Part shown: piece by piece, positions 22,409 through 36,232 of the stretch
Layout: the number at the start of each line of letters is the position of its first letter
Position numbering within the stretch: position 1 is the first letter of the stretch
Virus record (IMG/VR): IMGVR_UViG_3300027770_000026
Span: 1-64,000 of that record
DNA length: 64,000 nt
Reading direction: 5' to 3' (one strand)
Translations under genes and position numbers: made by a program
The notes under the pieces: model-generated
What the model was told of the DNA's origin: nothing
Seen by the model: only the letters and a program-made list of their open reading frames with translations
The model's database searches: none

Positions 22409-22409
22409 A

Positions 22410-22598: not shown

Positions 22599-22600
22599 GC

Positions 22601-22658: not shown

Positions 22659-22687
22659 CCAAAATTTTACCAATTTTTCAGCAGATT

Positions 22688-22957: not shown

Positions 22958-22965
22958 GATATACC

Positions 22966-23151: not shown

Positions 23152-23417
23152 GCCTCACCCCTCGCACGGATGTCAGCCGCAATCGCCTCGGCAGCGTTAA
23201 ACCACCCTGCTTCGTATGTGCCCACCATCATGGGTTCCTTAGGGCCACCGTAGGAGTTGGCAATCCGCGCACACGCCTTACGCTCGGCAGCGGCGACAAT
23301 TTGAGCAAAACGCTCTACACCATAGCAATCAAAGCTGAAGGTCTCTCGCCCGCGGCTGTCCTTTTCAACGTCGCCGGCCTCCCGCGCCCAGCGGATGATG
23401 TCTTCACGATTCATCAC
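23148..23417 (-). CDS. Small phage protein, ERFAxxVAAAERxAC family
   Basis: REDIIRWAREAG...ERFAQIVAAAERKAC. Confidence 0.7.
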   Translation of the reverse strand: MMNREDIIRWAREAGDVEKDSRGRETFSFDCYGVERFAQIVAAAERKACARIANSYGGPKEPMMVGTYEAGWFNAAEAIAADIRARGEA

Positions 23418-23611
23418 TCAAATCCAAAATGAGTTTTAAGGTCCTGAGCTAGCAAGTGCCCATGCTCCCAGTTACGGGAGGCATAGTTGGCACATTCTTG
23501 AATAATCAACTCAGCAAACTTTTCAGGATCCAGTTCACCTGCAACATAATCACCGTTGCTGTCAACGGCCAGTGCTCGGTCGTAGAGTTTTGCAATTCGT
23601 TGGTTCATCAC
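23414..23611 (-). CDS. Small phage protein, KFAELIxxEC family
   Basis: EKFAELIIQECA. Confidence 0.7.
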   Translation of the reverse strand: MMNQRIAKLYDRALAVDSNGDYVAGELDPEKFAELIIQECANYASRNWEHGHLLAQDLKTHFGFE

Positions 23612-23835
23612 TCAATTCCAAAGTGTTGTTGAATCTTGCTTGCATAAGTGCTGGCGGGTTCACGATGGTCGACCGCATCTGCTACAACTGTAACACATTC
23701 CCGCACAATCAACTCAGCAAACTTGTCACGATACAACTGATGAAATTCTGAGAGACCGCCAGCATTTACAGTGGCGAGTTGCACTGCCGCAAAGTCTTGT
23801 GCCTGTTCAGAAAGTTTAACAATTCCTTTAATCAT
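23608..23835 (-). CDS. Small phage protein, KFAELIxxEC family
   Basis: DKFAELIVRECV. Confidence 0.7.
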   Translation of the reverse strand: MIKGIVKLSEQAQDFAAVQLATVNAGGLSEFHQLYRDKFAELIVRECVTVVADAVDHREPASTYASKIQQHFGIE

Positions 23836-24026
23836 CGACCTACAACCTCCATGCGCTTCTGTAGTGCTACCATACCCTCGCGATACGTCTCAAGTTGGTC
23901 TCGCGCTTGCATAAGCGCCGTATGCTTATGGGCATCATGGCTAATGCGCTGTTCGATGTCAATAGCCTTGTTCACATTGCGAATGGCTAGATTGAGTGCC
24001 TCAATCAAGTCTTGATATTCGTTCAT
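23832..24026 (-). CDS. Hypothetical coiled-coil protein
   Basis: ATG 24026 overlaps upstream TGA (ATGA). Confidence 0.6.
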   Translation of the reverse strand: MNEYQDLIEALNLAIRNVNKAIDIEQRISHDAHKHTALMQARDQLETYREGMVALQKRMEVVGR

Positions 24027-24238
24027 GGGCGTTCCGTCACACGATAGGCCACCGTGCGTCCATTTGGCGAACTGCGGCGCGGGATCGTTCGTTCGGACTG
24101 CTGAACTGCAGCCAACATCTCCGTGACATAGGCCAGCTTGTTGTTGGCTTCGGTCAGTGAGGCATGGGAACTCAAGGTATCCCAACGCGAGGGACGGGTT
24201 TCAAATTCCAACAGTCGTTCAACAATATAATGACTCAT
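24023..24238 (-). CDS. Hypothetical protein
   Basis: 71-aa ORF, coupled. Confidence 0.6.
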   Translation of the reverse strand: MSHYIVERLLEFETRPSRWDTLSSHASLTEANNKLAYVTEMLAAVQQSERTIPRRSSPNGRTVAYRVTERP

Positions 24239-24438
24239 TGCTGCTCTCCCAAAATTGCCTGTACCTGTTTCTGCTTGAGACCTAGCGTTTGGGCAATGCG
24301 TCGCACCCCGTATGCATGGTCACGATGTAAGTGTAGCACCATTGTGCGGTTGATTGCAACCAGTAATGCGGTCTTGTCCACACCACTGCCGCTGGTCATG
24401 AGATTGTACAACTGCGATTCGGTTAGGGTAGGCATCAC
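24235..24438 (-). CDS. Small HTH DNA-binding protein
   Basis: YGVRRIAQTLGLKQKQVQAIL. Confidence 0.6.
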   Translation of the reverse strand: MMPTLTESQLYNLMTSGSGVDKTALLVAINRTMVLHLHRDHAYGVRRIAQTLGLKQKQVQAILGEQQ

Positions 24439-24668
24439 TGCCCCTTTGCACGGATAAGTTTGGCGGCATATTCAGTCCAGCACTCTGCTCCGTCGCCATA
24501 GGTGTCAATGCTGTCACACACCTTCGCACACGCCTCACGCTCGGCAGCGGCGACGAGGGCGGCAAAGCGTTCAAGTTCTTCATCGGATACACTCCAAGGA
24601 TTCATTAGGTGATTCGGTTCGGTAAACCCAGCCTCTCGTGCCATGCGGATGATGTCATCGCGTTCCAT
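24435..24668 (-). CDS. Small phage protein, ERFAxxVAAAERxAC family
   Basis: RDDIIRMAREAG...ERFAALVAAAEREAC. Confidence 0.7.
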   Translation of the reverse strand: MERDDIIRMAREAGFTEPNHLMNPWSVSDEELERFAALVAAAEREACAKVCDSIDTYGDGAECWTEYAAKLIRAKGQ

Positions 24669-24925
24669 TACTTCACCTCCACAGTCTTAAGAGACTCTTT
24701 ACTGATGCATTCATAGCCACCATATACTTCCATGTAAATACCATTAGCATTTACGCAAGCATCAGCTCTCTTATCCAGTTCTGATATAACAAAAAATTGT
24801 GCAATAAACAGAAAAATAGAAAACAACATAATGCTAATCAAAAAAATATTGAAAATCTTTTCAAGAATCCATTTAAAACTCATTACTGTACGCAGTGCTG
24901 TAGCCACGATCGTACGAGTCATCAC
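24668..24925 (-). CDS. Small membrane protein
   Basis: One TM helix, Cys pair (CVNANG...YEC). Confidence 0.6.
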   Translation of the reverse strand: MMTRTIVATALRTVMSFKWILEKIFNIFLISIMLFSIFLFIAQFFVISELDKRADACVNANGIYMEVYGGYECISKESLKTVEVK

Positions 24926-24951
24926 CGTTATAGCAAGGCATACGTTACTCC

Positions 24952-25248
24952 TCAGACCTGTTCAAAGCCAACAAACTTCACGCGGTACTTGACGCCGTCC
25001 CGTACCATGACGTCACCTACCATGGTCGAGCGCAGGCCGTACTCGCGACCGTTGTGAACGTGCAGCGGAGCCATGACCTGCACCTCAGGATGGAAGTCAC
25101 CGTTCTCAACCAGCTCATTATTCTCGCCAAACACCAGTCGCGTCTTGGACCACGAACCCATGATGTTCTGCGTCATGCAGTAGGCAGTATCGAGCTTGTC
25201 GGTCATGACCTCAGCAACGAGCTGCTCACCGTGATACACCTGGATCAT
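24952..25248 (-). CDS. Hypothetical protein
   Basis: Strong RBS/promoter; LRSTMVGDV. Confidence 0.7.
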   Translation of the reverse strand: MIQVYHGEQLVAEVMTDKLDTAYCMTQNIMGSWSKTRLVFGENNELVENGDFHPEVQVMAPLHVHNGREYGLRSTMVGDVMVRDGVKYRVKFVGFEQV

Positions 25249-25279
25249 GTTCTGCTCCTTTCCCTAACCCTATGTGCAT

Positions 25280-25308
25280 ATTATACGGGTCAAGGGTCCA
25301 AAACGCAA
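25280..25308 (-). promoter_or_regulatory. Sigma70-type early promoter
   Basis: TTGCGT-N17-TATAAT. Confidence 0.8.
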
Positions 25309-25310
25309 GA

Positions 25311-25342
25311 ACTAAATTCCTAATAGAATCAATGACTTACGC
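25311..25342. repeat. Promoter-associated repeat, half-site copy B
   Basis: Minus: GCGTAAGTCATTGATTCTATTAGGAATTTAGT, one mismatch to 57600-57631. Confidence 0.85.
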
Positions 25343-25909
25343 AGCCCGATGTAAACGACTGTTTTTTGGGACTCGTGCAAGCAGGAATTCCATCTGATCT
25401 GCTAGAATTTTACGATTTTTTAGGATCATTTTCTCAAATACACTGGGCGCATAGGGAACGTAGAGCAGGGGCATGCGGGCTTCTTCTGGAGTCTTGCAGC
25501 CCTTAGCACTGTTACAGGGCTTGCATGCGCTCACGGTGTTGCTCCAAAAATGTCGCCCACCCTTGCTACGGGGAATGATATGGTCAATGGTCAGTTCTCG
25601 ATCACCAAATGCGTCACCGCAGTAGGCACAGACGTTACGGTCGCGAGCATAGAGGATTTCACGCACAGTAAATTGATTGTTTACGCGATTTAAGAACTTG
25701 TCCCCAAACAGTGGCCCTGTTACACCTACGATCGAGCTGATGTCAATGGAACTTTGCTCACCGTATGCGTTAATGCCACCGTAGAATGTCTTGATAGTTG
25801 CGCCTACTTCCCACAGCACCTTGTGCTTGGCATAGTAGCAAACAGCGTCTTCGTAACAAACCCAATCTTTGGGCATGCCCGCGCTGTCTGTAATCAATAC
25901 TTGACTCAT
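25337..25909 (-). CDS. HNH endonuclease
   Basis: CAYCG...TIDHIIPRSKGG...CKPCNSAKG. Confidence 0.9.
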   Translation of the reverse strand: MSQVLITDSAGMPKDWVCYEDAVCYYAKHKVLWEVGATIKTFYGGINAYGEQSSIDISSIVGVTGPLFGDKFLNRVNNQFTVREILYARDRNVCAYCGDAFGDRELTIDHIIPRSKGGRHFWSNTVSACKPCNSAKGCKTPEEARMPLLYVPYAPSVFEKMILKNRKILADQMEFLLARVPKNSRLHRAA

Positions 25910-25976
25910 GATTTCCTCCTTTGATCTATTGTATTACTTATTTTGTATGAATACAACAGCTTAGATATATATTTTT

Positions 25977-26654
25977 ATGATTACAGTATTCTACCATTTA
26001 TACATTCCGCCAGGCGATGATTGTTTTACATTTCCCTTGATATTAGACGAACAGTTAGGACTCATCGAGCGTTCGTTATTGGGCAAACATGCCAAGATAA
26101 AAATGTGCATCACCATGCCTAAGAATCAATGGTTGCCATTGATGTGTCGAAATTACGTTCACTTAGTGACCGAATATATCAGCGGTCATTTCCCCAACGT
26201 AGAAATAATTGATATTCGGGATGTTAGCGAACCAAATCTATACGAAGGTCAGACCTTATACGCATTATGGCGATATTCTCATTTATATGAAGGGAATTAT
26301 CTATATCTACACAGTAAAGGTATATCTCACAGGAATATTGCATCTACTCATGATTGGCGTAAATGCATGCAATATTTTCTAGTGGGGAAATGGGAAACAT
26401 GTTTGGCCTATTTAAAATCGCACGATGTAGTTGCTACTAAATCACATTGGTTGGGTAATTTCTGGTGGGCAACGTCGGACCATCTCCGACGTTTACCAGA
26501 CCCGTTGTCTTTAGCGGGAGATTCTACAGACCCAAACGTGCGTTTAGTGTATGAATCCTGGGTCTTACATGCAAATCCAAAAATTCACTACATGCATGAA
26601 ACTAAGGTGAATCATTACCTTGAGTTTTATCCGCCTTCGGCTTACGAAACTTAA
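25977..26654 (+). CDS. Putative glycosyltransferase-like protein
   Basis: YLYLHSKG...WRKCMQY...GNFWWA; function inferred only. Confidence 0.55.
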   Translation: MITVFYHLYIPPGDDCFTFPLILDEQLGLIERSLLGKHAKIKMCITMPKNQWLPLMCRNYVHLVTEYISGHFPNVEIIDIRDVSEPNLYEGQTLYALWRYSHLYEGNYLYLHSKGISHRNIASTHDWRKCMQYFLVGKWETCLAYLKSHDVVATKSHWLGNFWWATSDHLRRLPDPLSLAGDSTDPNVRLVYESWVLHANPKIHYMHETKVNHYLEFYPPSAYET

Positions 26655-26795: not shown

Positions 26796-27446
26796 TTACT
26801 TAACTTCGAAGTCGCCAATTCCGTCTGCAACTACTCCAAAAATCCGTTCGGTAGTAACAACTGCAGTCTTCTTAGCTGCAGTCTTGCGCACAGTCTTGGG
26901 ACTAAATGCTTCTTCCACAATTGGGGTTGCAAGATAAGCAAGTACATTCTCAGGCGTGCTTTCAACGTATGGGTCATCACCAGCATTGTTCTTCTTACCT
27001 GGCTCAACAAATGCAGCTTCAATGATGCCATTGTTGATTACTACTGCATAACGCCAACTGCGAACACCAAAGCCCAAATTGTCCTTAGCAACTAGCATTC
27101 CCATCTTGTCTGTAAACTTATCGGAACCGTCTGGTAGCAACTTGACATTCTTGATCTTGAGATCCTTGCCCCAAGCATTCATAGTGAATGCATCGTTAAC
27201 GCTGAGGCAGTAAACCTCATCCACATGCTTGCGGAATGTCTTGTAATTACGTTCAAAACCAGGTAGCTGCTCATTGCTGCAGGTTGGGGTAAACGCACCG
27301 GGTAGTGCAAACAGTACCACACGACGATCCTTGAATAGATCCCGGGTATTAATATCCTGCCAATCGTACAGCCCGTCCTCGTCCTTCACACGAGTACGCA
27401 GTACAACTGCAGGCGCCTTGGTACCAATCAACTTAGACTTAGCCAT
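26796..27446 (-). CDS. Peroxiredoxin (Prx5/Ahp1 type)
   Basis: LPGAFTPTCS, SVNDAF, RSWRYA. Confidence 0.92.
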   Translation of the reverse strand: MAKSKLIGTKAPAVVLRTRVKDEDGLYDWQDINTRDLFKDRRVVLFALPGAFTPTCSNEQLPGFERNYKTFRKHVDEVYCLSVNDAFTMNAWGKDLKIKNVKLLPDGSDKFTDKMGMLVAKDNLGFGVRSWRYAVVINNGIIEAAFVEPGKKNNAGDDPYVESTPENVLAYLATPIVEEAFSPKTVRKTAAKKTAVVTTERIFGVVADGIGDFEVK

Positions 27447-27527: not shown

Positions 27528-28625
27528 TTAGTCTTCTTTGTCTCCACCCCAATCAAAGTAACGTAGCCAAATGTATTCGCTTCGCTTGTTGTACTTGTTT
27601 AGTGAACGTAATGCGAATCCTGCCTTGCCTAGGAAACCAAATCCAAACAATACACTTTCCATAGTCTTTTCAATATCACCGGAATCGGTTGGCTTGCAAT
27701 AAAAATGGCTGGGCATCCAATCAATTTCATTGGACACAACAATTGGAATACCGCGGCTTACAAAGTCTGCTGCCACAATATTAAAGCTTTCAGTTAAACT
27801 GGCCTGTAGTCCGATATCCATTTCTTCAATTAATTTCAAAAAGTCGTCGTGCTGCAACCAACCATGCTCCACTAGCTGGTAATTGTCCCCGAGATTATTA
27901 AACAATCCGCGTAGGTTCTTTAGTACGTTGTTGCCCTGATTTTCGATACGCGCCACATTAATATGGAAGCGAAGCTTTTTATTATTCTTTTGTGCGTAAC
28001 TGATTGCGGCAATTGCTTGCACCAAGTGATTCTTCATGGGACGAATTGCACCAAAGCAACCTACGTTAATAGTGTCAACAATTGGTTTGCGGGTTACTAC
28101 GTTTTGTTTGATATTGTAGAAATTAGGCAAGTAAATGACTCGCTTGCAAATTGGATGCTTGCGTCCATATGCTGATGCTACAATTTTACAAGTATCGTTA
28201 TACGCCTTTACACTGTTTGGGGCAATATAAACATTTCTGTAGGTGAGATACTTCAGAGTCCAGTCTAGCGCAACTCCGTCGCTTGCAAGGAATGGCATTT
28301 CGCTGTGATTACGAACAATCCATTTCACATGAGGATGCAGTTGTTGTAGTACTGCAAACTTCTCGGGTACTACCCAAAATGCTTCAATGATCACATGGGT
28401 GGGTTTGTATGCTTTAACTTCGCGATCAATTGCGTTGTTGTCTGGTACTTCTACTAGTTTACTTTCTGTACCATTTTGATTCAGCATGTCTACTACAAAG
28501 CTTGCGCTATTACGCAGACCACTTGACACACAGTATTGGAAGTATGGATGATAATCTTGATGTAATGTGGTATTTTCATCAAGAGTCATTTCTCTCTTTT
28601 TGAGAATAAAAAGTAATTTAGACAT
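27528..28625 (-). CDS. GT-B (GT4-like) glycosyltransferase
   Basis: GCFGAIRPMKN...ESFNIVAAD. Confidence 0.75.
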   Translation of the reverse strand: MSKLLFILKKREMTLDENTTLHQDYHPYFQYCVSSGLRNSASFVVDMLNQNGTESKLVEVPDNNAIDREVKAYKPTHVIIEAFWVVPEKFAVLQQLHPHVKWIVRNHSEMPFLASDGVALDWTLKYLTYRNVYIAPNSVKAYNDTCKIVASAYGRKHPICKRVIYLPNFYNIKQNVVTRKPIVDTINVGCFGAIRPMKNHLVQAIAAISYAQKNNKKLRFHINVARIENQGNNVLKNLRGLFNNLGDNYQLVEHGWLQHDDFLKLIEEMDIGLQASLTESFNIVAADFVSRGIPIVVSNEIDWMPSHFYCKPTDSGDIEKTMESVLFGFGFLGKAGFALRSLNKYNKRSEYIWLRYFDWGGDKED

Positions 28626-28686
28626 GGGACACCTCAGAGTAGTAGCAGCAGCGACTACTATTTAGTATAATAATTAAAAGAATGTA

Positions 28687-29073
28687 TTAATTTCTACCTG
28701 GCTGTGGTTCACGATGCCACACACCATAGATGCAGTGTACTAGTTCATGACCAAAGAACTCGGGCTCGTAACTGACCTTAGGATCAACCATGTATATGGT
28801 GCAGGTTAAATCATCTTTACGCAGCACACTGAACGCAGCAACGTTCTTAGGAGTAATAGTTCCTTGTATATTATTGCGTTTTGCAATCTCTGCACTTAGT
28901 GCAGCGGCACTGGGCATTAACACTATCTTCATGGGGAACTCTGTGCGTGTAAATGTTTCCTTTTCAAAGTAGTAACCATCTTTGCCCACCTTACCGGTGT
29001 CGCTGTTAGGTCCGCAAGCAACCAGAGCTAGTGCTGCAAAGAATGTTAATATTAATTGTTTAAAGTTTGCCAT
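28687..29073 (-). CDS. Lipoprotein with HExxH zinc-metalloprotease motif
   Basis: Lipobox ALVA-C after MANFKQL...; FFGHELVHC. Confidence 0.7.
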   Translation of the reverse strand: MANFKQLILTFFAALALVACGPNSDTGKVGKDGYYFEKETFTRTEFPMKIVLMPSAAALSAEIAKRNNIQGTITPKNVAAFSVLRKDDLTCTIYMVDPKVSYEPEFFGHELVHCIYGVWHREPQPGRN

Positions 29074-29081
29074 ACTATTAT

Positions 29082-29552
29082 TTAGTAAACATGTACGGTT
29101 ATCACATGCACAAATACGCATATGATCATGATAAACACAATAGGCAAGTGTCCCACATGCCATGCGGAAAACAATCGTTCAAAGCCCTTGCGGTTACGTA
29201 GGTATCGACCTATTATGCCACTGGCTGCTACTATCAACATACTGAATAGTGCTATGTTACTGTTGGGACTGCCCAAATGATAATTGCTGTGATAGAGAAT
29301 AGTAATGGGTCCAAATATACCCAACAGTTGATGTATGTTAAACCATTCTGCAGTTTTACCAATCTTCCACATCCATTCAAATCTTTTGTGCATGGAATAA
29401 GAAAACATCAGTGCCATCAAGCTAGCACCTGTCCAACCTAGTATATAGCCTAACCCGTTGTGTGGGTCAATGAGCCTGTAGGGAGATATGACCCATCCAA
29501 TAAAGATTGTAGTTACGGCCATAACCGTAACTACAACTATGCTAGTTTTCAT
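29082..29552 (-). CDS. Inner-membrane His-rich protein (cytochrome b/ferric-reductase-like TM domain)
   Basis: About 5 hydrophobic segments; WFNIHQLLG, ILYHS, WHVGH, VHVITVH. Confidence 0.75.
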   Translation of the reverse strand: MKTSIVVVTVMAVTTIFIGWVISPYRLIDPHNGLGYILGWTGASLMALMFSYSMHKRFEWMWKIGKTAEWFNIHQLLGIFGPITILYHSNYHLGSPNSNIALFSMLIVAASGIIGRYLRNRKGFERLFSAWHVGHLPIVFIMIICVFVHVITVHVY

Positions 29553-29558
29553 CCTGCC

Positions 29559-30326
29559 TTAAATTAACTTCCGTGTGGCGCGGTAATTAATGGCAAAGAA
29601 TTCGCCTTGCAACATCTTCTGAATGCGTGGATCGTTAATGAGCTGTGTGCATTTGAAGCTGATGCTGCTGTTTACACTATGGCAAGTTTCACAAGAATCG
29701 CTAGTAATTGGGTGTCCGCCCGGAGCATTGATCTTGCCCTTGGCAGTTGTACCATTATGGCAAGTTACACAGCCGGTTGTGATGCCTGCGTGAATTGCAG
29801 CAAAGCTACTATCCCAGTTACGTCCAGTGTTCTTGTGGCATACACCGCAGTCTTGTGTGGTTGGAATGTGGTCACTTGGCTTACCTTGTGCACCATATGT
29901 TCTAAATGCGTTATTGTGACAACTATCACATCTCTGTGTACTTACAGAGGCGTGGTTCATGTTTACACCTGATGTAAATGTCACTGTTGCGTGGCAGCTA
30001 CCGCAGTCTGTAGTTCCAATTGGAATGTGGCTGGTACTGCGTCCAACAGTTGCACTTGTTGGCGAACCGTTGTGGCAAGTTGCACAAACTTTAGGGGTAC
30101 CAATAAATCTACCACCTGCGTGACAGCTGGCGCAGGTTGAACACTTGCCTGTGCTTAGGTGCGCACCAGTTAGCGGAAAGTTTGGGTGAATGGTTTCGTA
30201 GAGGGTGCATTCTGCAGCAGATGCGTCCGGAGAAAAAGTAGTTAGTACTGCTGTGGGTATTGCATAAGTTGCAAACACGATTACAGCCATAAGAATAGAC
30301 GCAAAGAAACTCTTTAATTTCGCCAT
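29559..30326 (-). CDS. Periplasmic multiheme (7 x CxxCH) cytochrome c
   Basis: Signal peptide; CASCH, CATCH, CGSCH, CDSCH, CGVCH, CVTCH, CETCH; distal His in FPLTGAH, HIP, NH, IH, GHP. Confidence 0.93.
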   Translation of the reverse strand: MAKLKSFFASILMAVIVFATYAIPTAVLTTFSPDASAAECTLYETIHPNFPLTGAHLSTGKCSTCASCHAGGRFIGTPKVCATCHNGSPTSATVGRSTSHIPIGTTDCGSCHATVTFTSGVNMNHASVSTQRCDSCHNNAFRTYGAQGKPSDHIPTTQDCGVCHKNTGRNWDSSFAAIHAGITTGCVTCHNGTTAKGKINAPGGHPITSDSCETCHSVNSSISFKCTQLINDPRIQKMLQGEFFAINYRATRKLI

Positions 30327-30358
30327 GATAATGGTCCCCGTTAGGATAGTATTTATAC

Positions 30359-32260
30359 TTAGAAGTCGTAACGGTACCCAATGTAAAAGGTTTGATTGGT
30401 GAATACGGGACTTACTTGATAGATGGTTACAGCATATGGACGTAGTATTAAGGATCTAGCATACTGTGCTTCCAGCTTGCCGTGCTCGCCAAATGCGTAT
30501 ATTATGCGTAGGTTTGCACTAATTGTGCGCGATGTGTGCGCTATGTCGTCATAGCGTAAGGTAGCAGACAAGCTGTTTGTATCCCAAAATCTATAGTTGT
30601 TGGCCACTGTAACAAAGTAGCTGCGGCGTTCACCAATGGTACGATTGGCTACAAATTCAACTGTGTTGTGAGAGTCCCAAACGTTTTCGCCGGACAAGTG
30701 TAGTGTTAGCGAATAGTTGTTGCGTGTGCCCACAGTTACTGGCACGGGATCAAACTGTGGCGAAATAGTAAATCCCGGAGTAGTACTCAAGTTGGTTACT
30801 TGCGCATCACCGGTCAGCGTCCATGTTTTATCTATGGTATAGCCCGCACCTACTACTAGCGAACTAGCTATGGGTGTGGTGGTGATAATATAACGATAGA
30901 TGTCGTTTGAATTCAATCCTGACCTAGCTAATAATTCTCCCACTGAATTGTATACTTGACGTTCGGGTTCCAGTATACCTAAGCCCAATGCAACGTCTGC
31001 GTATGGTATAGGACTGCGCCGGCGTTCGTAGCTAGCAAATATGTTGTAGCCGTTAAAGTAGTGTATGCCCTGAAAGTTAACCTTGTTAAACTTGCTGTAC
31101 TGAAAGTCATATTCGGTATTCAACAGTGCAGTAGTGGAAGTACCACCGTATTCTACATCTGCACCCAGTGCCATGCGTTCAACAAATCCATCTGCTATGC
31201 TGCGATTGATGTATAATGAAGTAGTGGTATTGTTAAATGGTCGCCATTCAAACCCCGCACCCACAAAGCGTCTAGTGGCAGTAGTTTCTCCGGTATATGG
31301 TACACCTGCTGCAAACGTCCACTTGTATTGGTCTTCGGTGCGGTACCAAGCACTGACTCCATCATACCGTCCAATGGCACCAGCTGAGGGGTTTTGTCTA
31401 CCCAGTCGTATGTTGTATCTAACGAATGTATCTTCAAAGTTTACATAAGCAATGTTAAGTCTTGCAGTGTTATCTTTATTCTCTAGTAGATCTCTTGCTG
31501 CGGTAAAGCGTAAACGACTGCTCCATATGTATTGATTGTGATGACGTTTGGCATCCAGTTGCAGTCCAGTTAAGCTGCTTATCTGAGAAGTGTTCCACTG
31601 TATGATACCTGCACTGTTACTGGTTGCACCAAAGTATAGATATTCACTAGCGGACCCTGATAGTTCAAAGCTGTCGCCTTGTCGTGGTGCGCGTTCCTTA
31701 AAGTTGTTTGCTGTTTCCGTGGGCTCAATTATTTCCAATGCCATTAAACGCTGCTGTACTCGCACACGGTCGTCAGTTTTCACATCATATAACTTTAAGT
31801 ACAGTGCGTATTCTACTTTGGCTTTGTCATACAGTTTGGACTTTTCGTATGCATACCCCAATAGTTCGTGTGCTTCTCGTGCGGTGGCTGGTGGCTGTGT
31901 GAGAATGAACGAACGTAGATTATTGATTGCTACAGTGTAGGGACCTTCTCTGCTGGTTAATACTTGTCGTGCTTCGCGTATGAGTTCTTCAGGTGGGCGT
32001 GTATCAAATGTTACTATGGGTTGATCTGGATCCGTTGGTGTGGCTGTAGCAGTGCGTGGTCGAGGTTTTGTCTCGGTGGGAACTGTTTCCACAATAGGCG
32101 GTAACCAACGTACAATGGTTACAGTTTCTGTTCTGCGTCGTGGTACTGGAGCTGCAGGTGGCGCAACTGGTGGACGATTAATAATGCCACTGACCTGGCT
32201 ATAAGTCACAGCGGGATATACTGCTGCACACAGTACGGCTACAACTAAAAACCTAATCAT
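30359..32260 (-). CDS. TPR-containing outer-membrane beta-barrel (porin-like)
   Basis: Signal peptide, Pro/Thr linker, TPR-like HELLGYAYE...A...Y, long run of amphipathic strands, C-terminal YIGYRYDF. Confidence 0.8.
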   Translation of the reverse strand: MIRFLVVAVLCAAVYPAVTYSQVSGIINRPPVAPPAAPVPRRRTETVTIVRWLPPIVETVPTETKPRPRTATATPTDPDQPIVTFDTRPPEELIREARQVLTSREGPYTVAINNLRSFILTQPPATAREAHELLGYAYEKSKLYDKAKVEYALYLKLYDVKTDDRVRVQQRLMALEIIEPTETANNFKERAPRQGDSFELSGSASEYLYFGATSNSAGIIQWNTSQISSLTGLQLDAKRHHNQYIWSSRLRFTAARDLLENKDNTARLNIAYVNFEDTFVRYNIRLGRQNPSAGAIGRYDGVSAWYRTEDQYKWTFAAGVPYTGETTATRRFVGAGFEWRPFNNTTTSLYINRSIADGFVERMALGADVEYGGTSTTALLNTEYDFQYSKFNKVNFQGIHYFNGYNIFASYERRRSPIPYADVALGLGILEPERQVYNSVGELLARSGLNSNDIYRYIITTTPIASSLVVGAGYTIDKTWTLTGDAQVTNLSTTPGFTISPQFDPVPVTVGTRNNYSLTLHLSGENVWDSHNTVEFVANRTIGERRSYFVTVANNYRFWDTNSLSATLRYDDIAHTSRTISANLRIIYAFGEHGKLEAQYARSLILRPYAVTIYQVSPVFTNQTFYIGYRYDF

Positions 32261-32262
32261 TG

Positions 32263-32655
32263 CTACTTGGTGATGCGGCGAGCAACCTTCTTCTTGGTCT
32301 TCTTAGCAGCAGTCTTAGGTGGGGCCTTGCTTAAAAAATGATACTTGTGGAATATCACAATCCATACAAACAGTGCAGCCAATCCTATGTTAAGTAATAT
32401 CTCGCCAGGAGGAGCTTTTACTGTATCAATGATCATGCCGTGACGTGGTATCATATCATAGTAAATGGTATTCATAGCGTTCCATGCTGAAGTAGCAATA
32501 ATGGAAACCAGTGCTATTTTAAGCGACCAATGTTGTAGTACAGGCCATTTGTAAATAATGCTGTTACCGTTACCAAACAGCAGTACAAAGAACGCAGTCA
32601 TTGCCAGACAAATAACAATATTAGCCGCTATATTCAACAGGTACATGAATTCCAT
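32263..32655 (-). CDS. Membrane protein with basic C-tail
   Basis: 3 TM helices, KKTKKK tail. Confidence 0.7.
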   Translation of the reverse strand: MEFMYLLNIAANIVICLAMTAFFVLLFGNGNSIIYKWPVLQHWSLKIALVSIIATSAWNAMNTIYYDMIPRHGMIIDTVKAPPGEILLNIGLAALFVWIVIFHKYHFLSKAPPKTAAKKTKKKVARRITK

Positions 32656-32665
32656 TGTCTACTCC

Positions 32666-33043
32666 TTATCTTTTTCGCACAGTCTTTTTTCGAGCTATGG
32701 GTTTCTTTCTAGTTAGCTTACGCCTATTAGGAATTATTTCCTCTGCAGCATCGGGTATGAATTTTTTAATGGCATATTCAATACCAGTTAACCCAAGAAA
32801 ACCCAGTATGAATGCAATACCAAAAGTAAGATTTTGATTACTAATATTTAAAGTATCAACTACAATTGGGGTTATATAATTGGCGCTGCCAATACCGGTG
32901 GCAATACTAACAGCAATGCTGTATAAATGCGTATTAGCTCCTTTTTTAATGGTTAGAAGCGAACCAAATAATCCCGACACAATAAGCCCCGCATTGATTC
33001 CAACTTCCTGAAGAAGATTCTCCTGCATTGTCGTTACCCCCAT
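32666..33043 (-). CDS. Putative holin-like membrane protein
   Basis: 3 TM helices (SGLFGS...GFLG), basic C-tail. Confidence 0.55.
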   Translation of the reverse strand: MGVTTMQENLLQEVGINAGLIVSGLFGSLLTIKKGANTHLYSIAVSIATGIGSANYITPIVVDTLNISNQNLTFGIAFILGFLGLTGIEYAIKKFIPDAAEEIIPNRRKLTRKKPIARKKTVRKR

Positions 33044-33071
33044 AACCTAGTATTTATTCACAGGGATAAAT

Positions 33072-33159
33072 TGGCGGAAGCGGTAGGATTCGAACCTACG
33101 GACCTGTGACAGTCGCTAGTTTTCAAGACTAGAGCCATAAACCGCTCGACCACGCTTCC
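33072..33159 (-). tRNA. trnS: tRNA-Ser(UGA)
   Basis: Cloverleaf, CT-TGA-AA loop, long V-arm, encoded CCA. Confidence 0.95.
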
Positions 33160-33166
33160 GTAACCT

Positions 33167-33242
33167 TGGCTGAGGGACTAGGATTCGAACCTAGGTACTT
33201 GGAATCAAAATCCAATGTCCTACCAGACTAGACGATCCCTCA
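33167..33242 (-). tRNA. trnQ: tRNA-Gln(UUG)
   Basis: TT-TTG-AT loop, GTTCGAATC, CCA. Confidence 0.95.
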
Positions 33243-33281
33243 ACGCTGTAATAGTTATACTGTACACTAACGCTAGTCAAA

Positions 33282-33310
33282 AATAAAGGGACTGTTAAAG
33301 CCCCTTTATT
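33282..33310. terminator. Probable terminator hairpin
   Basis: AATAAAGGG/CCCTTTATT. Confidence 0.6.
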
Positions 33311-33332
33311 GTATAGTGCATTTCTGCTGGGC

Positions 33333-33953
33333 TTACTTGTGACGCAGCACGTTGCTCAGTGTTTCCATAAACGACTGAAACTCTGCGTCTTCCTGTGTTG
33401 GCTCACTTTCTTTTACTGCAGGTGCAGTTGGACGATGTGGTCTCATGTCGGTAACTGTTTTTCTATCGGCTTTTGTAAACTGTTTGGTTGGAGTCAACCC
33501 CATTTTTCTTTGTGTAGCAGGTGACAAGTCCTTTACTGCAGATACTTGACTGTTAAAGTTAAACTGATCCTGTTGTCTACGAAGGCCCGTATTGTTTAAT
33601 CTGTCTTGTGCAGCTTTAAAACCTCGAACAGGAGCAGGAGCTGTGTCAGAATCCGCAGCATAATCGGCTACACCCATGTTTTTTGCCTGAGCTAGCTTCT
33701 GTGCTTTGCGAGCATCAGATGCGCTGAAATAAGTGTCGGGCTTTAGTTCGTCAAGCTGACTGCCAGTCATTTCACGGATACTTTCTAGGAATGCGTCAAA
33801 GTCAAAGTCTTCTTCTACTTCCTCGGGGACAGAAGTCTCCTCAAATTCCTCTGCAAAATTATTAATACTATCAACTTCATCAAGTTCCTGCGATTGTTCG
33901 CAAGAGCATGATTCTACTAGCATTAACATTTTCTTCATATCTTCACTGGCCAT
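33333..33953 (-). CDS. Hypothetical acidic protein, possibly internal head protein
   Basis: 206 aa, many LxE motifs, TAAATA upstream. Confidence 0.7.
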   Translation of the reverse strand: MASEDMKKMLMLVESCSCEQSQELDEVDSINNFAEEFEETSVPEEVEEDFDFDAFLESIREMTGSQLDELKPDTYFSASDARKAQKLAQAKNMGVADYAADSDTAPAPVRGFKAAQDRLNNTGLRRQQDQFNFNSQVSAVKDLSPATQRKMGLTPTKQFTKADRKTVTDMRPHRPTAPAVKESEPTQEDAEFQSFMETLSNVLRHK

Positions 33954-34306: not shown

Positions 34307-36232
34307 ATGAAAAGAAGTATTAGTTCACGCACAATATTAGAAGATAAACGCGCATTGTTAGAAGATCTATGCGAAGGCATGAATCTCAGGGATCGACTGC
34401 TAACAGAAGAAATCTACAATGAGTTTCATGATATTGGACGCATGATTTCCGAAGCCCAACTGACACAGGATCAGATACAGAAGCTGTTTGCAGCAGTATC
34501 CAAGGGTGCAGAAAAGGGTTGGAACGTGGACTTACCTGGTGGTGATCCAGATATTGGACCAGCAGGCGAAGGTGGCAACAAGACACTAATGGGCAAGATC
34601 TCGGGCGCGTGGCAAAAGCTCAAGAGTAAGATTGCACAAAGTGGCCCAGTAAGCGGATTTGACGTTACAGTAGACAAGCTACAAAAGCAAATCTCTGCAA
34701 AGTCAGGACCAGACGGAAAGCTAACCAAGGCAATCGCAGCATATAGAAAGTTTGGTGATAAGCATCCCGTCATGCAGGGTGTTGTTATTGCAGGTCTAAC
34801 TGCGGCAGCAGCAATGGGCGGCGGACTAGGCCTAGGTGCAGTTGCAGGCGTGGCAGGCGGACTAAGAACACTGGACCGCATGCTAATGGGTGATCGTGCT
34901 AGTAGCGCACTATGGAAGGGCTTCAAGGCAGGCGCAGTTACATACGGCGTTGGTTCAATCATCCAGGGTGTACAAGGTGGGCAGACTGCCACAGATACTG
35001 GTGCCGGACAAACTGCATCAGCGCAGCCGGCAGCAACACCAGCTCCAACTGGTGTAGATACAGCCACTCAAACTGTTGCAGCAGCTAAGGGCGATACACT
35101 AAGTCAGATTGCTCAGAAGATGGACGTTAGTGTTAAGGATCTAGTGCAAGCAAACCCACAAATAACCAATCCTAATGATTTGGGGCTTGGTGAGATTGTC
35201 AATATACCAAGTGCAACAGGAAATGCTGTATATCAAGGTGGAGTGGGAACTGCGTCCGACACTGCTGCTAAGGTCGCAAGCGGTCAATATACTCCAAGTC
35301 GCTACGGTATTAAAGAAAGCGTAGACTGGGACAAGATTTGCACTACTTTTGCAATCCAAGAAAGTATGAAGATGCCACTAAAGAGCGCAGTATACCTAAC
35401 ACCATATGGTGTACAGCAGGTAATGGAAACTGTTGAAAAGTATAAGGATGAACTAGACGAAGGTATTTGGGATGCAGTTAAGGCTGGATGGAACACTTCC
35501 AAGAACAAGATCACAACAGACAAGTTGGACTTGTGGTGGCGTAGAAACCGCGGCGAGAATCCAACAGACGGCCCAGTAGACAAACAAGTTGTCGTCGACT
35601 TCCTCAAGAAGATGGGCGTTAAGAGTGGTCTGGTTGATCGTGCGTTTAAGGAAGTTGGTATTCCGGACGAAGTTAACAAAGACGATGTTCCACCAACACC
35701 TACACCTACACCTACACCTACACCTACACCTACACCTACACCTACACCTACACCTACACCTACACCAAAACCAACACCAACTCCTCCGCCAACACCTACA
35801 CCTGGCGATAAAGAGCCTAAGCCCGGTGAGGTAGAACCTAAGCCAACACCTAATCCTGGTGACACTAAGCCACAGGATGGCGGTCAGGATGCAACACCGG
35901 CTCCAGCACCATCAATTACTCCTGCCAAGAGCAGCCAGGAATTGCTCTCAGGTCTCAATGCATTGTGGGATGACAATGCGGAATGGATCTACGAGAAGGG
36001 CGTTGGTAAGGATCTAATCAATTGGTTACAGGCCAAGATCAAGAAGTATCACACCGGTCCAGTTGGAGTTGGCCCAACTGATAAGAAAACTGTCAGTAAG
36101 TACGGTCTTGCAGAAGCCAAGCGCCGTAAGATGCTGATGATCGAACGCAAGATTGCTCAATACGAACAGCTAATTGCCGAGAACAAGAAAAAGCAAAAGA
36201 AGACGCTAACCGAATCTCGTAAAAAGAGATAA
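34307..36232 (+). CDS. LysM-domain protein with TM-like Gly/Ala segments and (PT)n linker
   Basis: AKGDTLSQIAQKMDVSVKDLVQANPQITNPNDLGLGEIVNIP. Confidence 0.85.
   Translation: MKRSISSRTILEDKRALLEDLCEGMNLRDRLLTEEIYNEFHDIGRMISEAQLTQDQIQKLFAAVSKGAEKGWNVDLPGGDPDIGPAGEGGNKTLMGKISGAWQKLKSKIAQSGPVSGFDVTVDKLQKQISAKSGPDGKLTKAIAAYRKFGDKHPVMQGVVIAGLTAAAAMGGGLGLGAVAGVAGGLRTLDRMLMGDRASSALWKGFKAGAVTYGVGSIIQGVQGGQTATDTGAGQTASAQPAATPAPTGVDTATQTVAAAKGDTLSQIAQKMDVSVKDLVQANPQITNPNDLGLGEIVNIPSATGNAVYQGGVGTASDTAAKVASGQYTPSRYGIKESVDWDKICTTFAIQESMKMPLKSAVYLTPYGVQQVMETVEKYKDELDEGIWDAVKAGWNTSKNKITTDKLDLWWRRNRGENPTDGPVDKQVVVDFLKKMGVKSGLVDRAFKEVGIPDEVNKDDVPPTPTPTPTPTPTPTPTPTPTPTPTPKPTPTPPPTPTPGDKEPKPGEVEPKPTPNPGDTKPQDGGQDATPAPAPSITPAKSSQELLSGLNALWDDNAEWIYEKGVGKDLINWLQAKIKKYHTGPVGVGPTDKKTVSKYGLAEAKRRKMLMIERKIAQYEQLIAENKKKQKKTLTESRKKR
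35696..35761 (+). repeat. (ACACCT)11 microsatellite encoding Thr-Pro linker
   Basis: 11 perfect hexamer units. Confidence 0.95.

Follow-up and report, generated by a model that had tools for sequence, protein, structure and literature searches.

The PCC3 gene cluster was defined bioinformatically and its function is untested (He et al. 2017, PMC5566968; Gallionellaceae survey, PMC10734462). Its multiheme cytochromes (MHCs) have 21-27 hemes in the periplasmic and 10-35 in the extracellular protein (PMC10734462), e.g. 24+14 and 24+12 hemes in Sideroxydans CL21, and the PCC3 porin of L. cholodnii was predicted to have 22 transmembrane strands. The inner-membrane proteins (IMPs) of PCC3 and PCC4 share a signature of five transmembrane (TM) helices, with WX3HX13H on TM3 and TM5 and SGxxG on TM4, and are different sequence families (PMC5566968). 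Among mobile elements, Borgs and other Methanoperedens extrachromosomal elements carry multiheme cytochromes (PMC13444090, PMC12660748), and amoC-phages carry a NapC/NirT cytochrome and an OprP porin (bioRxiv 10.64898/2026.06.18.733297).

We analysed the first 64,000 nucleotides (the window) of the IMG/VR contig UViG_3300027770_000026 (265,892 bp, ~266 kb), which comes from a freshwater jumbo phage and encodes a module of three genes. All three proteins are homologous to parts of PCC3-type clusters, as shown at the sequence level. Our analysis suggests, by a modest margin, that the module is a phage-encoded, miniaturised PCC3-type set giving an electron path across the host envelope; the electron transfer is inferred and was never shown even for the bacterial PCC3, and the host is unknown.

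Gene layout and the three proteins

Three co-oriented ORFs on the minus strand were confirmed at 29082-32260, encoding a barrel protein, a cytochrome and a membrane protein. They are tightly packed, with 32 nt between the barrel and cytochrome genes and 6 nt between the cytochrome and IMP genes. The first-pass annotation, made from the sequence alone, had described three adjacent co-oriented genes with their sizes, their domains and a YRYDF end on the barrel protein, all of which held exactly.

The outer-membrane barrel protein (633 aa; 30359-32260, minus strand) was assigned from its ORF, TPR domain, AF2 model and homologues. It starts with a Sec signal peptide (aa 1-22) and a disordered Pro-rich linker (aa ~23-84), followed by a TPR domain at aa ~90-177 (nt 31730-31993) that is supported by a PDB profile search (residues ~105-170, E 1e-7) and by five helices at 90-177 in the AF2 model. 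The rest is predicted to be a 22-strand beta-barrel (aa 196-633, nt 30362-31675; pLDDT 73.8), with a conserved helical insert (aa 419-461) after strand 13 and the C-terminus YRYDF. The Foldseek matches of this model are outer-membrane barrels only, and they are generic, with TM scores of 0.3-0.4. We found 29 close homologues and 1249 cluster representatives of this protein.

The second gene (29559-30326, minus strand) encodes an exported heptaheme c-type cytochrome of 255 aa, based on its ORF, Pfam matches and alignment. Its N-terminal signal sequence ends in A-x-A / AEC and its C-terminal FKC is conserved. The protein has exactly seven CxxCH motifs and scores above the cut-offs of the Pfam models Cytochrome_C7 (PF14522; 40.6 bits vs 24.8) and Paired_CXXCH_1 (PF09699; 34.9 bits vs 20.6). 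All seven motifs and the residues H47, H56, H100, H125, H153, H179 and H205 are invariant across 36 homologues with 46-96% identity, so that the earlier reading of seven CxxCH motifs with interspersed distal His held; this invariance is far beyond chance. The protein is likely a bis-His multiheme cytochrome of the c7/c3 type, with the heme binding inferred from sequence, and its ~31 residues per heme is the density of wire-type cytochromes. Overall 252 homologues were found, and among solved structures GSU1996 (3OV0, E 3e-5) comes closest. A relative of the cytochrome stands alone in a Hyphomicrobiales MAG. For the cytochrome, AF2 gave only a poor model (pLDDT 62.5).

The third gene (29082-29552, minus strand) encodes the IMP, a protein of 156 aa with five TM helices, assigned from its ORF, motifs and a structure match. 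Its conserved motifs are W70-x3-H74-x13-H88 on TM3, S111-G-x-x-G115 on TM4 and W131-x3-H135-x13-H149 on TM5, and hence the earlier description of a 156-aa polytopic protein with TM His held, now with the PCC3/PCC4 IMP signature. We consider the IMP likely to be a ferric-reductase-domain-like di-heme b cytochrome. This membership rests on the motif and the predicted fold, since the Pfam Ferric_reduct model was not matched and only a weak match to DUF4405 (E 0.03) was found. In the Atlas, the predicted structure of the IMP matches a 'Ferric reductase like' cluster of 311 aa (TM score 0.95) and 805-aa proteins with Pyr_redox_2 and Fer4 domains (TM score 0.83). As in the ferric reductase superfamily (NOX, FRE, STEAP, MsrQ/YedZ), two His pairs 13 residues apart lie on two helices and would hold two stacked b hemes, whereas the phage IMP stops at five TM helices and lacks an NAD(P)H/FAD domain.

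A T4-late-promoter-like octamer, TATAAATA, lies at 30350-30357 (minus strand, perfect motif match). It begins 1 nt past the barrel stop codon and 20-odd nt ahead of the cytochrome ATG, and is kept at the same place in the locus L001 although the flanking genes have dS ~1. The window has four such octamers against 4.5 expected by chance, and without enrichment its promoter function is unproven. The earlier claim of a TAAATA-type promoter flanking the module failed, as the octamer is inside it, between the barrel and cytochrome genes.

Several neighbouring genes were not counted as parts of the module. A gene for a 130-aa membrane protein (32263-32655, minus strand; an ORF outside the module) has its stop codon 3 nt upstream of the barrel ATG, suggesting a shared transcript or translational coupling. 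It has no match in the family searches and was excluded because it is not kept beside the module in L001. Next to it is a holin-like membrane protein of 125 aa (32666-33043, minus strand; PHROG 2359 'holin', E 5e-11). On the other side a probable lipoprotein (28687-29073, minus strand), recognised in translation by its LVAC lipobox and a HELVH motif, likely starts at the internal ATG at 29073, 9 nt past the IMP stop codon; it has no significant family match and is also not kept beside the module in L001. A peroxiredoxin gene (26796-27446) as well as glycosyltransferase and sugar-modification genes are found nearby.

Comparison with PCC3 and other systems

We seeded 56 loci with a bacterial IMP and then searched them with profiles of the phage barrel (A1), cytochrome (A2) and IMP (A3). 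PCC3-type loci were called by their architecture and heme counts, without direct comparison to Slit_0867-0870. At least 11 of the 56 have the order IMP, 24-heme MHC, 13-23-heme MHC and barrel, with heme counts that agree with the published PCC3. Profile A1 matches the terminal barrel gene of the clusters with PCC3 architecture (E 1e-35 to 1e-61), A2 matches the 13-23-heme MHC adjoining that barrel (E 1e-40 to 1e-76), and A3 matches 57 ORFs in the IMP-seeded loci. Pairwise, the phage barrel is 23% identical to P0208 over 579 aa (E 2e-30), the cytochrome is 33% identical (E 7e-22) to an MHC with at least 12 hemes in the bacterial cluster L024, and the IMP is 37-52% identical to the IMP of L024 (E 1e-19). 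In a tree, the phage barrels and related 'mid' barrels split from those of PCC3-type clusters (SH-aLRT 99). Lone barrel homologues with no adjoining cytochrome exist in bacteria (Mariprofundaceae), and the one in the tree groups on the PCC3 side.

The phage module resembles PCC3 in having a barrel, an adjoining multiheme cytochrome and an IMP with the PCC3/PCC4 motif signature, in the 22 strands of its barrel model, the number predicted for the L. cholodnii porin, and in the low-complexity T/S/A/G-rich repeats CxxCHNG...GK..HIP of its cytochrome. It differs in that the cytochrome has 7 hemes rather than 10-35, the IMP has 156 aa rather than ~300 aa because a cytoplasmic TM4-TM5 loop of ~110-140 aa is missing, and the barrel N-terminus is much shorter and has no SPOR/SH3 domain. 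The gene order also differs, the module sits on a phage, and no Fer4/FAD oxidoreductase or CcmH-like gene adjoins it, whereas in bacteria a divergent gene for a Fer4/FAD pyridine-nucleotide-type oxidoreductase accompanies the IMP gene in nearly every case. The phage cytochrome matches the 'extracellular' MHC of He et al., not the one presumed to sit in the porin. The window and all phage loci examined lack a 21-27-heme periplasmic MHC, and tblastn with a 24-heme protein gave only weak matches, to the cytochrome genes of the module. Such a cytochrome is presumed to span the periplasm, and without it the route between the two membranes has a gap on paper. Hence the earlier proposal of an intact conduit held for intact and selected genes, and its completeness is not established.

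The other described systems are further away. PCC4 (He et al. 2017) likewise has a porin, small periplasmic MHCs (4, 5 and 10 hemes) and an IMP with the same motif signature, and many phage versions of the module add a 4-6-heme cytochrome; the phage IMP, however, aligns with IMPs of the 24-heme (PCC3-type) clusters, in a comparison that included no PCC4 sequences. MtrCAB, MtoAB and PioAB share with the module a multiheme wire facing the periplasm and sheathed by a barrel, adjoining genes and few residues per heme, but no homology at a detectable level. The solved MtrAB complex has 26 strands and 10 hemes, compared with 22 and 7 in the phage. Membership in this group was rejected, as the cytochrome scores 29.6 bits with the DmsE/MtrA model TIGR03508 against a cut-off of 192.2. 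MtrA was absent from the PDB profile search results for the cytochrome, the barrel matched no MtrB-type family, and MtrB was not in its top 50 Foldseek matches. The first-pass annotation had likened the module to both groups; the likeness to PCC3 held as homology of each of the three genes, and no Mtr/Mto kinship was detected. The Methanoperedens elements and amoC-phages are similarly large mobile elements, partly from freshwater, with cytochromes as auxiliary metabolic genes, but they are archaeal elements or carry host-like single genes without relation to this module, and not a porin-cytochrome set of a bacterial virus.

Viral origin, distribution and selection

The DNA carrying the module is viral, given the 100% identity of the window to the large IMG/VR contig, its tRNAs (22 in the window), a gp44-type clamp loader with 53% identity to the counterpart in the Pseudomonas jumbo phage PA5oct, its GC content and its flat depth. 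The GC content of the module is 0.45 compared with 0.436 in the window and 0.54-0.65 in bacterial PCC3 loci. An independent Logan contig (10.5 kb) spans 28000-33500 with zero differences and a flat depth of 21.3, and fragments from two other samples bridge the gene junctions. The read-coverage check asked for in the first-pass annotation thus found a flat depth and no sign of a chimera. Further copies of the module are on IMG/VR contigs 49-328 kb long and on others of 210 kb (NCBI) and 369 kb (JGI). A search of 185,579 species genomes matched only one contig, 2.2 kb long and assigned to an Actinomycetes MAG. One metatranscriptome contig of 151 nt is identical to a stretch inside the cytochrome gene, a weak hint of transcription.

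The barrel gene is directly followed by the 7-heme gene in 27 of the 27 phage-like loci examined, on contigs up to 369 kb with GC contents of 0.34-0.56 and otherwise unrelated neighbourhoods. The heme number is fixed at seven in all phage copies examined. The dN/dS values are 0.07 for the barrel, 0.09-0.11 for the cytochrome and ~0.09 for the IMP, i.e. 0.07-0.11 over the module, a sign of strong purifying selection, and 11 of 13 population SNPs are synonymous. The module genes are intact and under selection, and the survey of synteny and dN/dS proposed earlier came out in favour, with the barrel-cytochrome pair kept throughout. The IMP is seen in only two phage lineages and, within the flanks fetched, is absent from most; it lies upstream of the barrel in the second lineage (L005/L021). 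We regard it as an accessory part.

Various other genes occur beside the module. Two 2OG-Fe(II) oxygenase genes flank it in L001/L002 and in L005/L021, and a ferritin-domain gene is 3 kb away in L003. In L028 (GC 0.57), which may be bacterial, CcmH-like and CcmF genes surround a compact module.

The module qualifies as a set of auxiliary metabolic genes by its viral genome, host-like function and selection, with the function inferred and expression hinted at only by the one exact metatranscriptome fragment. No phage porin-cytochrome module was found in the open-access literature searched or in 50,697 GenBank phage records, so that the earlier statement that no such module had been described in a phage held within the literature and records searched.

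Proposed function and alternative explanations

As the three genes are reduced-size relatives of a bacterial PCC3 cluster, we think it probable that the phage equips the host envelope with an electron path of its own. We propose that the host Sec, Ccm and BAM machineries would export and mature the phage proteins during infection. The phage encodes no Ccm, and hence that of the host is required, consistent with the earlier claim of a need for host cytochrome c maturation. The 22-strand barrel would sit in the outer membrane, with the TPR domain and the Pro-rich linker in the periplasm, and the 7-heme bis-His wire would dock in or on it and carry electrons through the outer membrane, although no contact between the two was modelled. 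The wire might be 60-70 A long, an estimate that assumes ~9-10 A per heme and was not computed. The IMP would place a b heme close to either face of the membrane (H74/H135 and H88/H149) and so connect the inner membrane with the periplasm. The remaining gap would have to be bridged by host periplasmic carriers, a task that a small 4-6-heme paralogue may fulfil in other phages. The infected cell would thus acquire or strengthen an electron route connecting its respiratory chain with extracellular redox substrates (Fe, humic substances and possibly O2-derived species).

The direction of electron flow is the weakest step of this proposal. Electrons move outward through those ferric-reductase-domain proteins that have been characterised (NOX, FRE, STEAP, MsrQ). 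We favour outward flow because of this and because the bacterial IMP is paired with a Fer4/FAD oxidoreductase. Such flow may serve reductant disposal, or may allow the cell to respire extracellularly or reduce Fe(III) in lake water that is poor in oxygen and either humic or rich in iron, and would sustain energy and redox balance for the replication of a large phage. Inward flow is possible but less likely; host periplasmic carriers and the terminal oxidase would then receive electrons taken from Fe(II) or reduced humics outside the cell, which would yield extra energy in infection. PCC3 is common in Sideroxydans and has been put forward as an Fe(II) oxidation system of Gallionellaceae (PMC5566968, PMC10734462), the IMP gene of PCC3 went up in Sideroxydans CL21 cells that were oxidising iron, and Mtr/Mto-type conduits are reportedly reversible (PMC10734462). 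Against it, both PCC3 clusters of S. lithotrophicus ES-1 went down on Fe(II) (PMC8788666), the ferric-reductase-domain-type IMP and its bacterial Fer4/FAD partner point outward, and the GC range of the phages (0.34-0.56) implies many hosts, most of them unlikely to be iron oxidisers.

We consider it unlikely that the module is for iron acquisition, as a trans-envelope ferric reductase that solubilises surface Fe(III) for the Fe-dependent enzymes of the phage. The ferric-reductase-domain fold of the IMP fits this idea, as do the 2OG-Fe(II) oxygenases flanking the module in L001/L002 and L005/L021 and the ferritin-domain gene near it in L003. However, no iron transporter is linked to the module and the copy in the window has other neighbours; moreover, 2OG-Fe(II) oxygenases are common in aquatic phages, which makes the neighbourhood weak evidence. 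In another reading the barrel works like BcsC, PgaA or AlgE, as a TPR-barrel exporter or porin whose cargo might be the sugars made by the many glycosylation genes of the window, with the cytochrome an unrelated periplasmic redox or detoxifying protein. A TPR domain with a C-terminal barrel is indeed the BcsC/PgaA architecture, the Atlas feature match to a BCSC_C cluster is 0.90, AlgE is among the Foldseek matches, many glycosylation genes and the peroxiredoxin gene (26796-27446) are nearby, and some bacterial barrel homologues have no adjoining cytochrome. We nevertheless find this reading very unlikely: the barrel adjoins the 7-heme gene in all 27 phage-like loci and closes the cytochrome clusters in at least 11 bacterial loci, there is no Pfam match to BCSC_C or another exporter, and the Foldseek matches are generic. 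The barrels of BcsC, PgaA and AlgE have 16-18 strands, compared with 22 in the phage model. Finally, these data all but exclude an artefact, be it host DNA that was wrongly assembled or binned into a viral contig or a set of decaying passenger genes. The only species-genome match being a 2.2-kb contig in an Actinomycetes MAG, and the possibly bacterial nature of L028, speak for it; against it are the flat depth, the zero differences, the junction-bridging fragments, a module GC equal to that of the phage, the same module on other large contigs, dN/dS of ~0.1 and the invariance of all heme ligands.

A bolder form of the preferred PCC3-type reading, for which we see the balance as even, is that many lineages of large freshwater phages (GC 0.34-0.56) have a minimal trans-outer-membrane electron conduit of their own and with it would rewire the respiration of the infected cell to extracellular iron or humics. 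It would consist of a 22-strand barrel and a wire with a fixed number of seven hemes, to which some phages would add a small periplasmic cytochrome and a di-heme b membrane protein. If true, extracellular electron transfer would for the first time be found encoded by a virus, and no natural complex of the PCC3 type would be smaller.

Layout and products of the three genes

The module is made of three head-to-tail ORFs on the minus strand, exactly at the coordinates (29082-32260) claimed by the first-pass annotation. They encode a barrel protein (30359-32260, 633 aa), a heptaheme cytochrome (29559-30326, 255 aa) and an inner-membrane protein, IMP (29082-29552, 156 aa). The barrel ATG is separated by 3 nt from the stop of an upstream gene for a 130-aa membrane protein, and the spacers are 32 nt between barrel and cytochrome and 6 nt between cytochrome and IMP. 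All three proteins are intact, exported or membrane-located, and their c- and b-heme ligands are conserved.

The barrel protein begins with a signal peptide followed by a Pro-rich linker, the latter being disordered in the AF2 model. Its TPR domain is supported by a PDB profile match (E 1e-7) and by five helices in the model, and TPR matches were all that the PDB sequence search with the barrel profile gave. The model has 22 beta strands over residues 196-632 (pLDDT 73.8, pTM 0.57), with a conserved helical insert (419-461) after strand 13, and the protein ends in YRYDF. A Foldseek search of this model against the PDB returned only outer-membrane barrels (MOMP, the FimD usher, OccD, AlgE and OmpF; TM 0.3-0.4) without MtrB among the top 50 matches, and Pfam, PHROGs and NCBIfam gave nothing. 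The Foldseek matches are generic and assign no family; the model predicts an outer-membrane barrel of no solved family.

The cytochrome has seven CxxCH motifs and scores above the Pfam cut-offs for Cytochrome_C7 and Paired_CXXCH_1. Across 36 homologues (46-96% identity) the seven CxxCH and seven further His are invariant, as are the AAEC signal-peptidase context and a C-terminal FKC. Because of these invariant motifs and His we infer, from sequence alone, seven bis-His hemes in ~218 mature residues. The resulting density, ~31 residues per heme, has been associated with wire-like cytochromes such as MtrA (He et al., PMC5566968). By sequence, the closest protein with a solved structure is the Geobacter dodecaheme GSU1996 (3OV0, E 3e-5). 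MtrA was not recovered in the PDB profile search, and the score for the DmsE/MtrA model was 29.6 bits (cut-off 192). AF2 modelled the cytochrome poorly (pLDDT 62.5), and the result is not usable for a fold search.

Five hydrophobic helices are found in the 156-aa protein, and an N-in/C-out topology, again only inferred from the sequence, fits its basic loops. A weak DUF4405 match was all that Pfam, PHROGs and NCBIfam returned, and in the Atlas its structure is close to that of a 311-aa 'Ferric reductase like' cluster (TM 0.95). The longer relatives (233-271 aa) carry an extra ~110-140 aa in the cytoplasmic TM4-TM5 loop.

The octamer TATAAATA lies between the barrel and cytochrome genes, and is conserved in L001, the locus of a close relative, despite a dS of ~1 in the neighbouring genes. 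This octamer is the consensus of T4 late promoters. In the window it is no commoner than expected by chance. A scan of 28400-33400 for sigma-70 promoters and terminators was uninformative, with 16 found and 11 expected. One lake metatranscriptome has an exact 151-nt contig within the cytochrome gene and two more contigs in flanking phage genes, and a search of RNA runs found none with 1/20 of the module's words. Transcription of the module is hinted at but not proven, as carry-over of DNA could explain these contigs.

Homology to bacterial PCC3 clusters

All three phage genes are homologues of parts of PCC3, a bacterial porin-cytochrome cluster type, since profile and pairwise matches, cluster order and heme numbers agree. 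For the IMPs of PCC3 and PCC4, five TM helices were described, with a WX3HX13H motif on each of TM3 and TM5 and SGXXG on TM4, and a likeness to the ferric reductase domain was noted (PMC5566968). The phage IMP matches this signature exactly (W70-x3-H74-x13-H88 on TM3, S111-G-I-I-G115 on TM4 and W131-x3-H135-x13-H149 on TM5). A distant barrel homologue of 1025 aa (P0208) is encoded on a bacterial contig (L024) with flagellar genes alongside, near a Fer4/FAD oxidoreductase, a CcmH-like TPR protein, a 297-aa IMP with the same motifs, a 24-heme cytochrome and a cytochrome with at least 12 hemes. The pairwise matches of the phage proteins to their counterparts there have E-values of 2e-30 for the barrel, 7e-22 for the cytochrome with at least 12 hemes and 1e-19 for the IMP.

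With a bacterial IMP as query we fetched 56 metagenomic loci, whose ORFs were then searched with profiles built from the three phage proteins. At least 11 of the 56 encode, on one strand and in this order, an IMP (~300 aa), a 24- or 27-heme cytochrome (~600 aa), a 13-23-heme cytochrome and a barrel (716-879 aa). The phage profiles match the 13-23-heme cytochromes of these loci with E-values of 1e-32 to 1e-76 and their barrels with 1e-35 to 1e-61. The heme numbers agree with those of PCC3 in Gallionellaceae (21-27 and 10-35; PMC10734462) and in Sideroxydans CL21 (24+14 and 24+12); the loci are called PCC3-type on their architecture and heme counts. The PCC3 porin of L. cholodnii was predicted to have 22 transmembrane strands, equal to the number in the phage barrel model. 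Hence the likeness to PCC3 proposed by the first-pass annotation held as homology of all three genes. No match to MtrA came from the PDB profile search, and none to MtrB among the top 50 of Foldseek.

The phage version differs from PCC3 by what it lacks. It has no 21-27-heme cytochrome, no Fer4/FAD or CcmH-like gene (both seen in PCC3-type clusters) and no CcmF; the cytoplasmic loop of the IMP is deleted, and the 13-23 hemes of the bacterial cytochrome are reduced to a fixed seven. The long SPOR/SH3/TPR N-terminus of the bacterial barrels is also missing; those of PCC3 type have TPR N-terminal domains and related ones have SPOR or SH3. The phage barrel homologue is modelled with 22 strands, not up to 42.

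In the PCC3-type loci (L031-L086) a Fer4/FAD oxidoreductase gene is almost always divergent from the IMP gene (e.g. L039 8467-9768, L061 1543-2838 and L024 11154-12494). Its product has 431-467 aa, Fer4 and FAD/pyridine-nucleotide domains and an N-terminal TM segment. He et al. 2017 (PMC5566968) described four PCC3 components, and such a partner is unmentioned in the relevant sections. It could be the cytoplasmic electron donor for the IMP.

Two candidates were rejected for synteny, i.e. the Hyphomicrobiales cytochrome P0123, solitary among housekeeping genes, and the Mariprofundaceae SPOR/SH3/TPR-barrel P0254, with no cytochrome adjoining. Gene order is unreadable in L025, where no clean ORF lies downstream of the 24-heme gene.

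A quick ML tree of the barrels sets 13 PCC3-type barrels and a lone Mariprofundaceae homologue apart from 43 phage or 'mid' sequences (SH-aLRT 99). The tree is unrooted and most 'mid' rows are of unknown context, and an old capture followed by spread among phages is one possibility that fits it. The 7-kb locus L028 (1-7088, GC 0.57) encodes a CcmH-like TPR protein, a compact barrel (562 aa), 5-heme and 7-heme cytochromes and then CcmF. It might represent a bacterial lineage from which the module came, or else a phage that carries Ccm genes, and is too short to tell.

Viral origin, recurrence and selection

Over the barrel gene and its flanks, the window is 100% identical to UViG_3300027770_000026 of IMG/VR (265,892 bp) and to another UViG, 69 kb long. 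An independent 10,465-nt contig, from the run that probably gave the assembly, covers 28000-33500 with zero differences and a flat depth of 21.3, and low-depth fragments from two other samples (98-100% identical) bridge the lipoprotein/IMP, IMP/cytochrome and cytochrome/barrel junctions. The GC content of the module is 0.45, close to that of the window (0.436), vs 0.54-0.65 in the bacterial loci with the homologous cluster. A chimeric host insert would have refuted the viral-contig claim of the first-pass annotation; no chimera was seen and the claim held. The window also encodes a ClpB-like ATPase matching a phage family (E 5e-230), a gp44-type clamp loader with 53% full-length identity to Pseudomonas jumbo phage PA5oct and relatives, a holin-like protein, UvdE and many sugar-modification proteins. 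ARAGORN and Rfam agree on 22 tRNA genes (33072-61949), which form several small clusters and all lie on the minus strand. They serve 18 amino acids, Gly, Ser and Leu each having a second isoacceptor, and include two tRNA-Met. A scan of GTDB genomes for the phage-type barrel matched only L009 (JANXME010000210.1, 2255 bp), binned in an Actinomycetes MAG and likely a mis-binned phage fragment. The scan patterns were built from the phage-type TPR region, and carry little information on distant bacterial relatives.

The barrel has 29 close homologues (43-97% identity), and every contig that could be inspected is phage-like. L001 (97 kb) has the same three genes. The others include L003 (49 kb, with ThyX, RNR and GH19), L004 (74 kb, with DNA ligase, Tad3, Acb3 and homing endonucleases), the contig of the barrel homologue P0027 (66 kb), the NCBI assembly L006 (210 kb), L007 (369 kb, with RF-1 and SmpB), L026/L027 (23 and 52 kb, barrel and 7-heme gene), 14 IMG/VR loci (L010-L023, up to 328 kb) and two more of a more distant clade (L087 and L088, 28 and 106 kb, GC 0.53-0.56).

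In 27 of 27 phage-like loci a cytochrome gene with exactly seven CxxCH comes directly after the barrel gene, and most have a 4-6-heme paralogue (~175-230 aa) between the two; the possibly bacterial L028, outside these 27, has the same arrangement. The IMP was found only downstream in the window lineage and upstream of the barrel in the L005/L021 lineage (326-kb contig; 158 aa, 44% identical). Barrel and heptaheme cytochrome are thus the core, and the IMP is accessory. Neighbours vary even among close relatives, with holin-like and membrane genes in the window and two 2OG-Fe(II) oxygenases in L001, so the module moves as a cassette. Holin-like, spanin-like or GH19 neighbours stand beside it in three lineages, but a role in a lysis cassette was rejected, as the evidence is too thin and neighbours differ between lineages.

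The module genes are linked in phages and under strong purifying selection. Comparison of the window with L001 (85% aa identity) gives dN/dS values of 0.07 (barrel), 0.09-0.11 (cytochrome) and 0.09-0.10 (IMP), and 11 of 13 variant positions within the module in another sample are synonymous. The relaxed selection that would have counted against the first-pass reading was not seen; the synteny survey it proposed showed the barrel/7-heme linkage kept and the IMP in two lineages.

A T5orf172-like gene of homing-endonuclease type is directly upstream of the barrel in L002 (9210-9506) and in a third contig; it is missing from L001, otherwise identical to L002. In L004 the module has GIY-YIG/NUMOD3 genes close by. 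All of these genes are conceivable vehicles for moving the cassette between phages. The P0027 contig encodes CsgF and CsgG (curli secretion), a FecR-like protein and a CHASE2-guanylate cyclase a few kb upstream of the module. Many phage barrel homologues have 717-729 aa (loci L012-L019, L023 and L005/L021; proteins P0010, P0011, P0018 and P0029), with ~90 extra N-terminal aa ahead of a hydrophobic stretch to which the signal peptide of the window protein aligns. These extra residues form an MJ0042-type zinc ribbon (PF13719/PF13717) in P0018 and P0029. The extension may be a cytoplasmic domain with a signal anchor, odd for an outer-membrane barrel, or the start may be called too far upstream.

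Directly after the IMP gene the window encodes a probable lipoprotein (28687-29073, minus strand) with an LVAC lipobox and a HELVH metalloprotease-like motif; an internal start is more likely, because taking the ORF at its full length (to 29163) would give an 82-nt overlap with the IMP gene. A peroxiredoxin (26796-27446, minus strand; Redoxin E 1e-25, PHROG 2281 E 2e-65), extended at its C-terminus by ~45 aa, is encoded 1.6 kb from the module and is another redox feature of this region. The 641-aa protein at 34307-36232 (plus strand), with a LysM domain, weak endolysin/transglycosylase PHROG matches and a long (PT)n repeat, is likely a cell-wall-binding virion or lysis protein. Two small paralogous ORFs (23148-23417 and 24435-24668, minus strand) share the motif (R)EDIIR(W/M)AREAG...ERFA..VAAAER.ACA in a raised-GC stretch (0.48-0.51 at 22001-26000), and an HNH endonuclease gene is at 25337-25909. 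A large set of sugar-nucleotide and glycosylation genes (40303-45026, 51109-52404, 60258-61202, 17264-18292 and 27528-28625) covers GDP-mannose 4,6-dehydratase, DegT-type aminotransferase, C-methyltransferase, FkbM methyltransferase, epimerases and GT4 glycosyltransferases, and a similar set adjoins the module in L001.

Proposed electron path, rivals and meaning

We propose that the di-heme b protein would carry electrons across the inner membrane, that the periplasm would be bridged by carriers of the host or, in other phages, by their small cytochrome, and that the heptaheme wire, housed in or docked on the barrel, would take electrons through the outer membrane; these steps are inferred, without a model of the complex. 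Heme attachment would rely on host Ccm, since the phage version lacks CcmH-like and CcmF genes. A weak point is that the counterpart of the phage cytochrome is the 'extracellular' cytochrome of PCC3 rather than the one thought to lie inside the porin.

Outward flow is the favoured direction, because characterised FRD proteins carry electrons outward and the bacterial IMP pairs with a cytoplasm-facing Fer4/FAD oxidoreductase. Characterised FRD proteins (NOX, FRE, STEAP and MsrQ) pass electrons outward, and some bacterial proteins join Pyr_redox_2 and Fer4 domains to an IMP-like fold. This step is weak since PCC3 has no tested function, is down on Fe(II) in S. lithotrophicus ES-1 (PMC8788666) and has one IMP gene up with iron oxidation in Sideroxydans CL21. 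Inward electron uptake or iron acquisition by the same hardware remain possible, and the sequence cannot separate either from outward transfer. Alternatively, the barrel could be a BcsC/PgaA-like exporter, in favour of which are its TPR-barrel architecture, an Atlas feature match of 0.90 and the glycosylation genes close by; we consider this unlikely, as the barrel and cytochrome genes are invariably adjacent in phages and bacterial clusters alike. A chimeric or decaying insert in a viral contig is all but excluded by the UViG identity, flat depth, bridged junctions, phage-like GC, invariant heme ligands and low dN/dS.

In the full-text literature searched, no porin-cytochrome module is reported for a bacteriophage. 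The module is also absent from deposited phage genomes, since against 50,697 GenBank phages a DNA search matched tRNA only and tblastn with the cytochrome found nothing. The first-pass claim that no such phage module had been described thus held within these searches. The closest precedents are the multiheme cytochromes on Borgs and other Methanoperedens elements, the NapC/NirT cytochrome and OprP porin described for amoC-phages in a preprint, and phage genes for heme precursors from bog lakes where electroactive bacteria abound (PMC11480375). The amoC-phage proteins are unrelated to this module.

The module is a naturally minimised, virus-borne set of PCC3 type, a type itself still hypothetical in function. 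PCC3 is widespread in Proteobacteria and untested, with huge components (600-1000-aa barrels and 13-35-heme cytochromes); the phage set is small (633 + 255 + 156 aa, 7 c hemes and 2 b hemes), which should ease expression, electrochemical tests and structure solution and offer a route to the long-open function of PCC3. Nor is it a one-off, as many samples yielded the barrel and heptaheme pair, on over 20 viral or phage-like contigs that reach 369 kb. If our reading is true, viruses would carry and spread hardware for extracellular electron transfer, beyond killing iron- and humic-cycling bacteria, and infection would directly shape anaerobic respiration and the redox cycling of iron and carbon in lakes.
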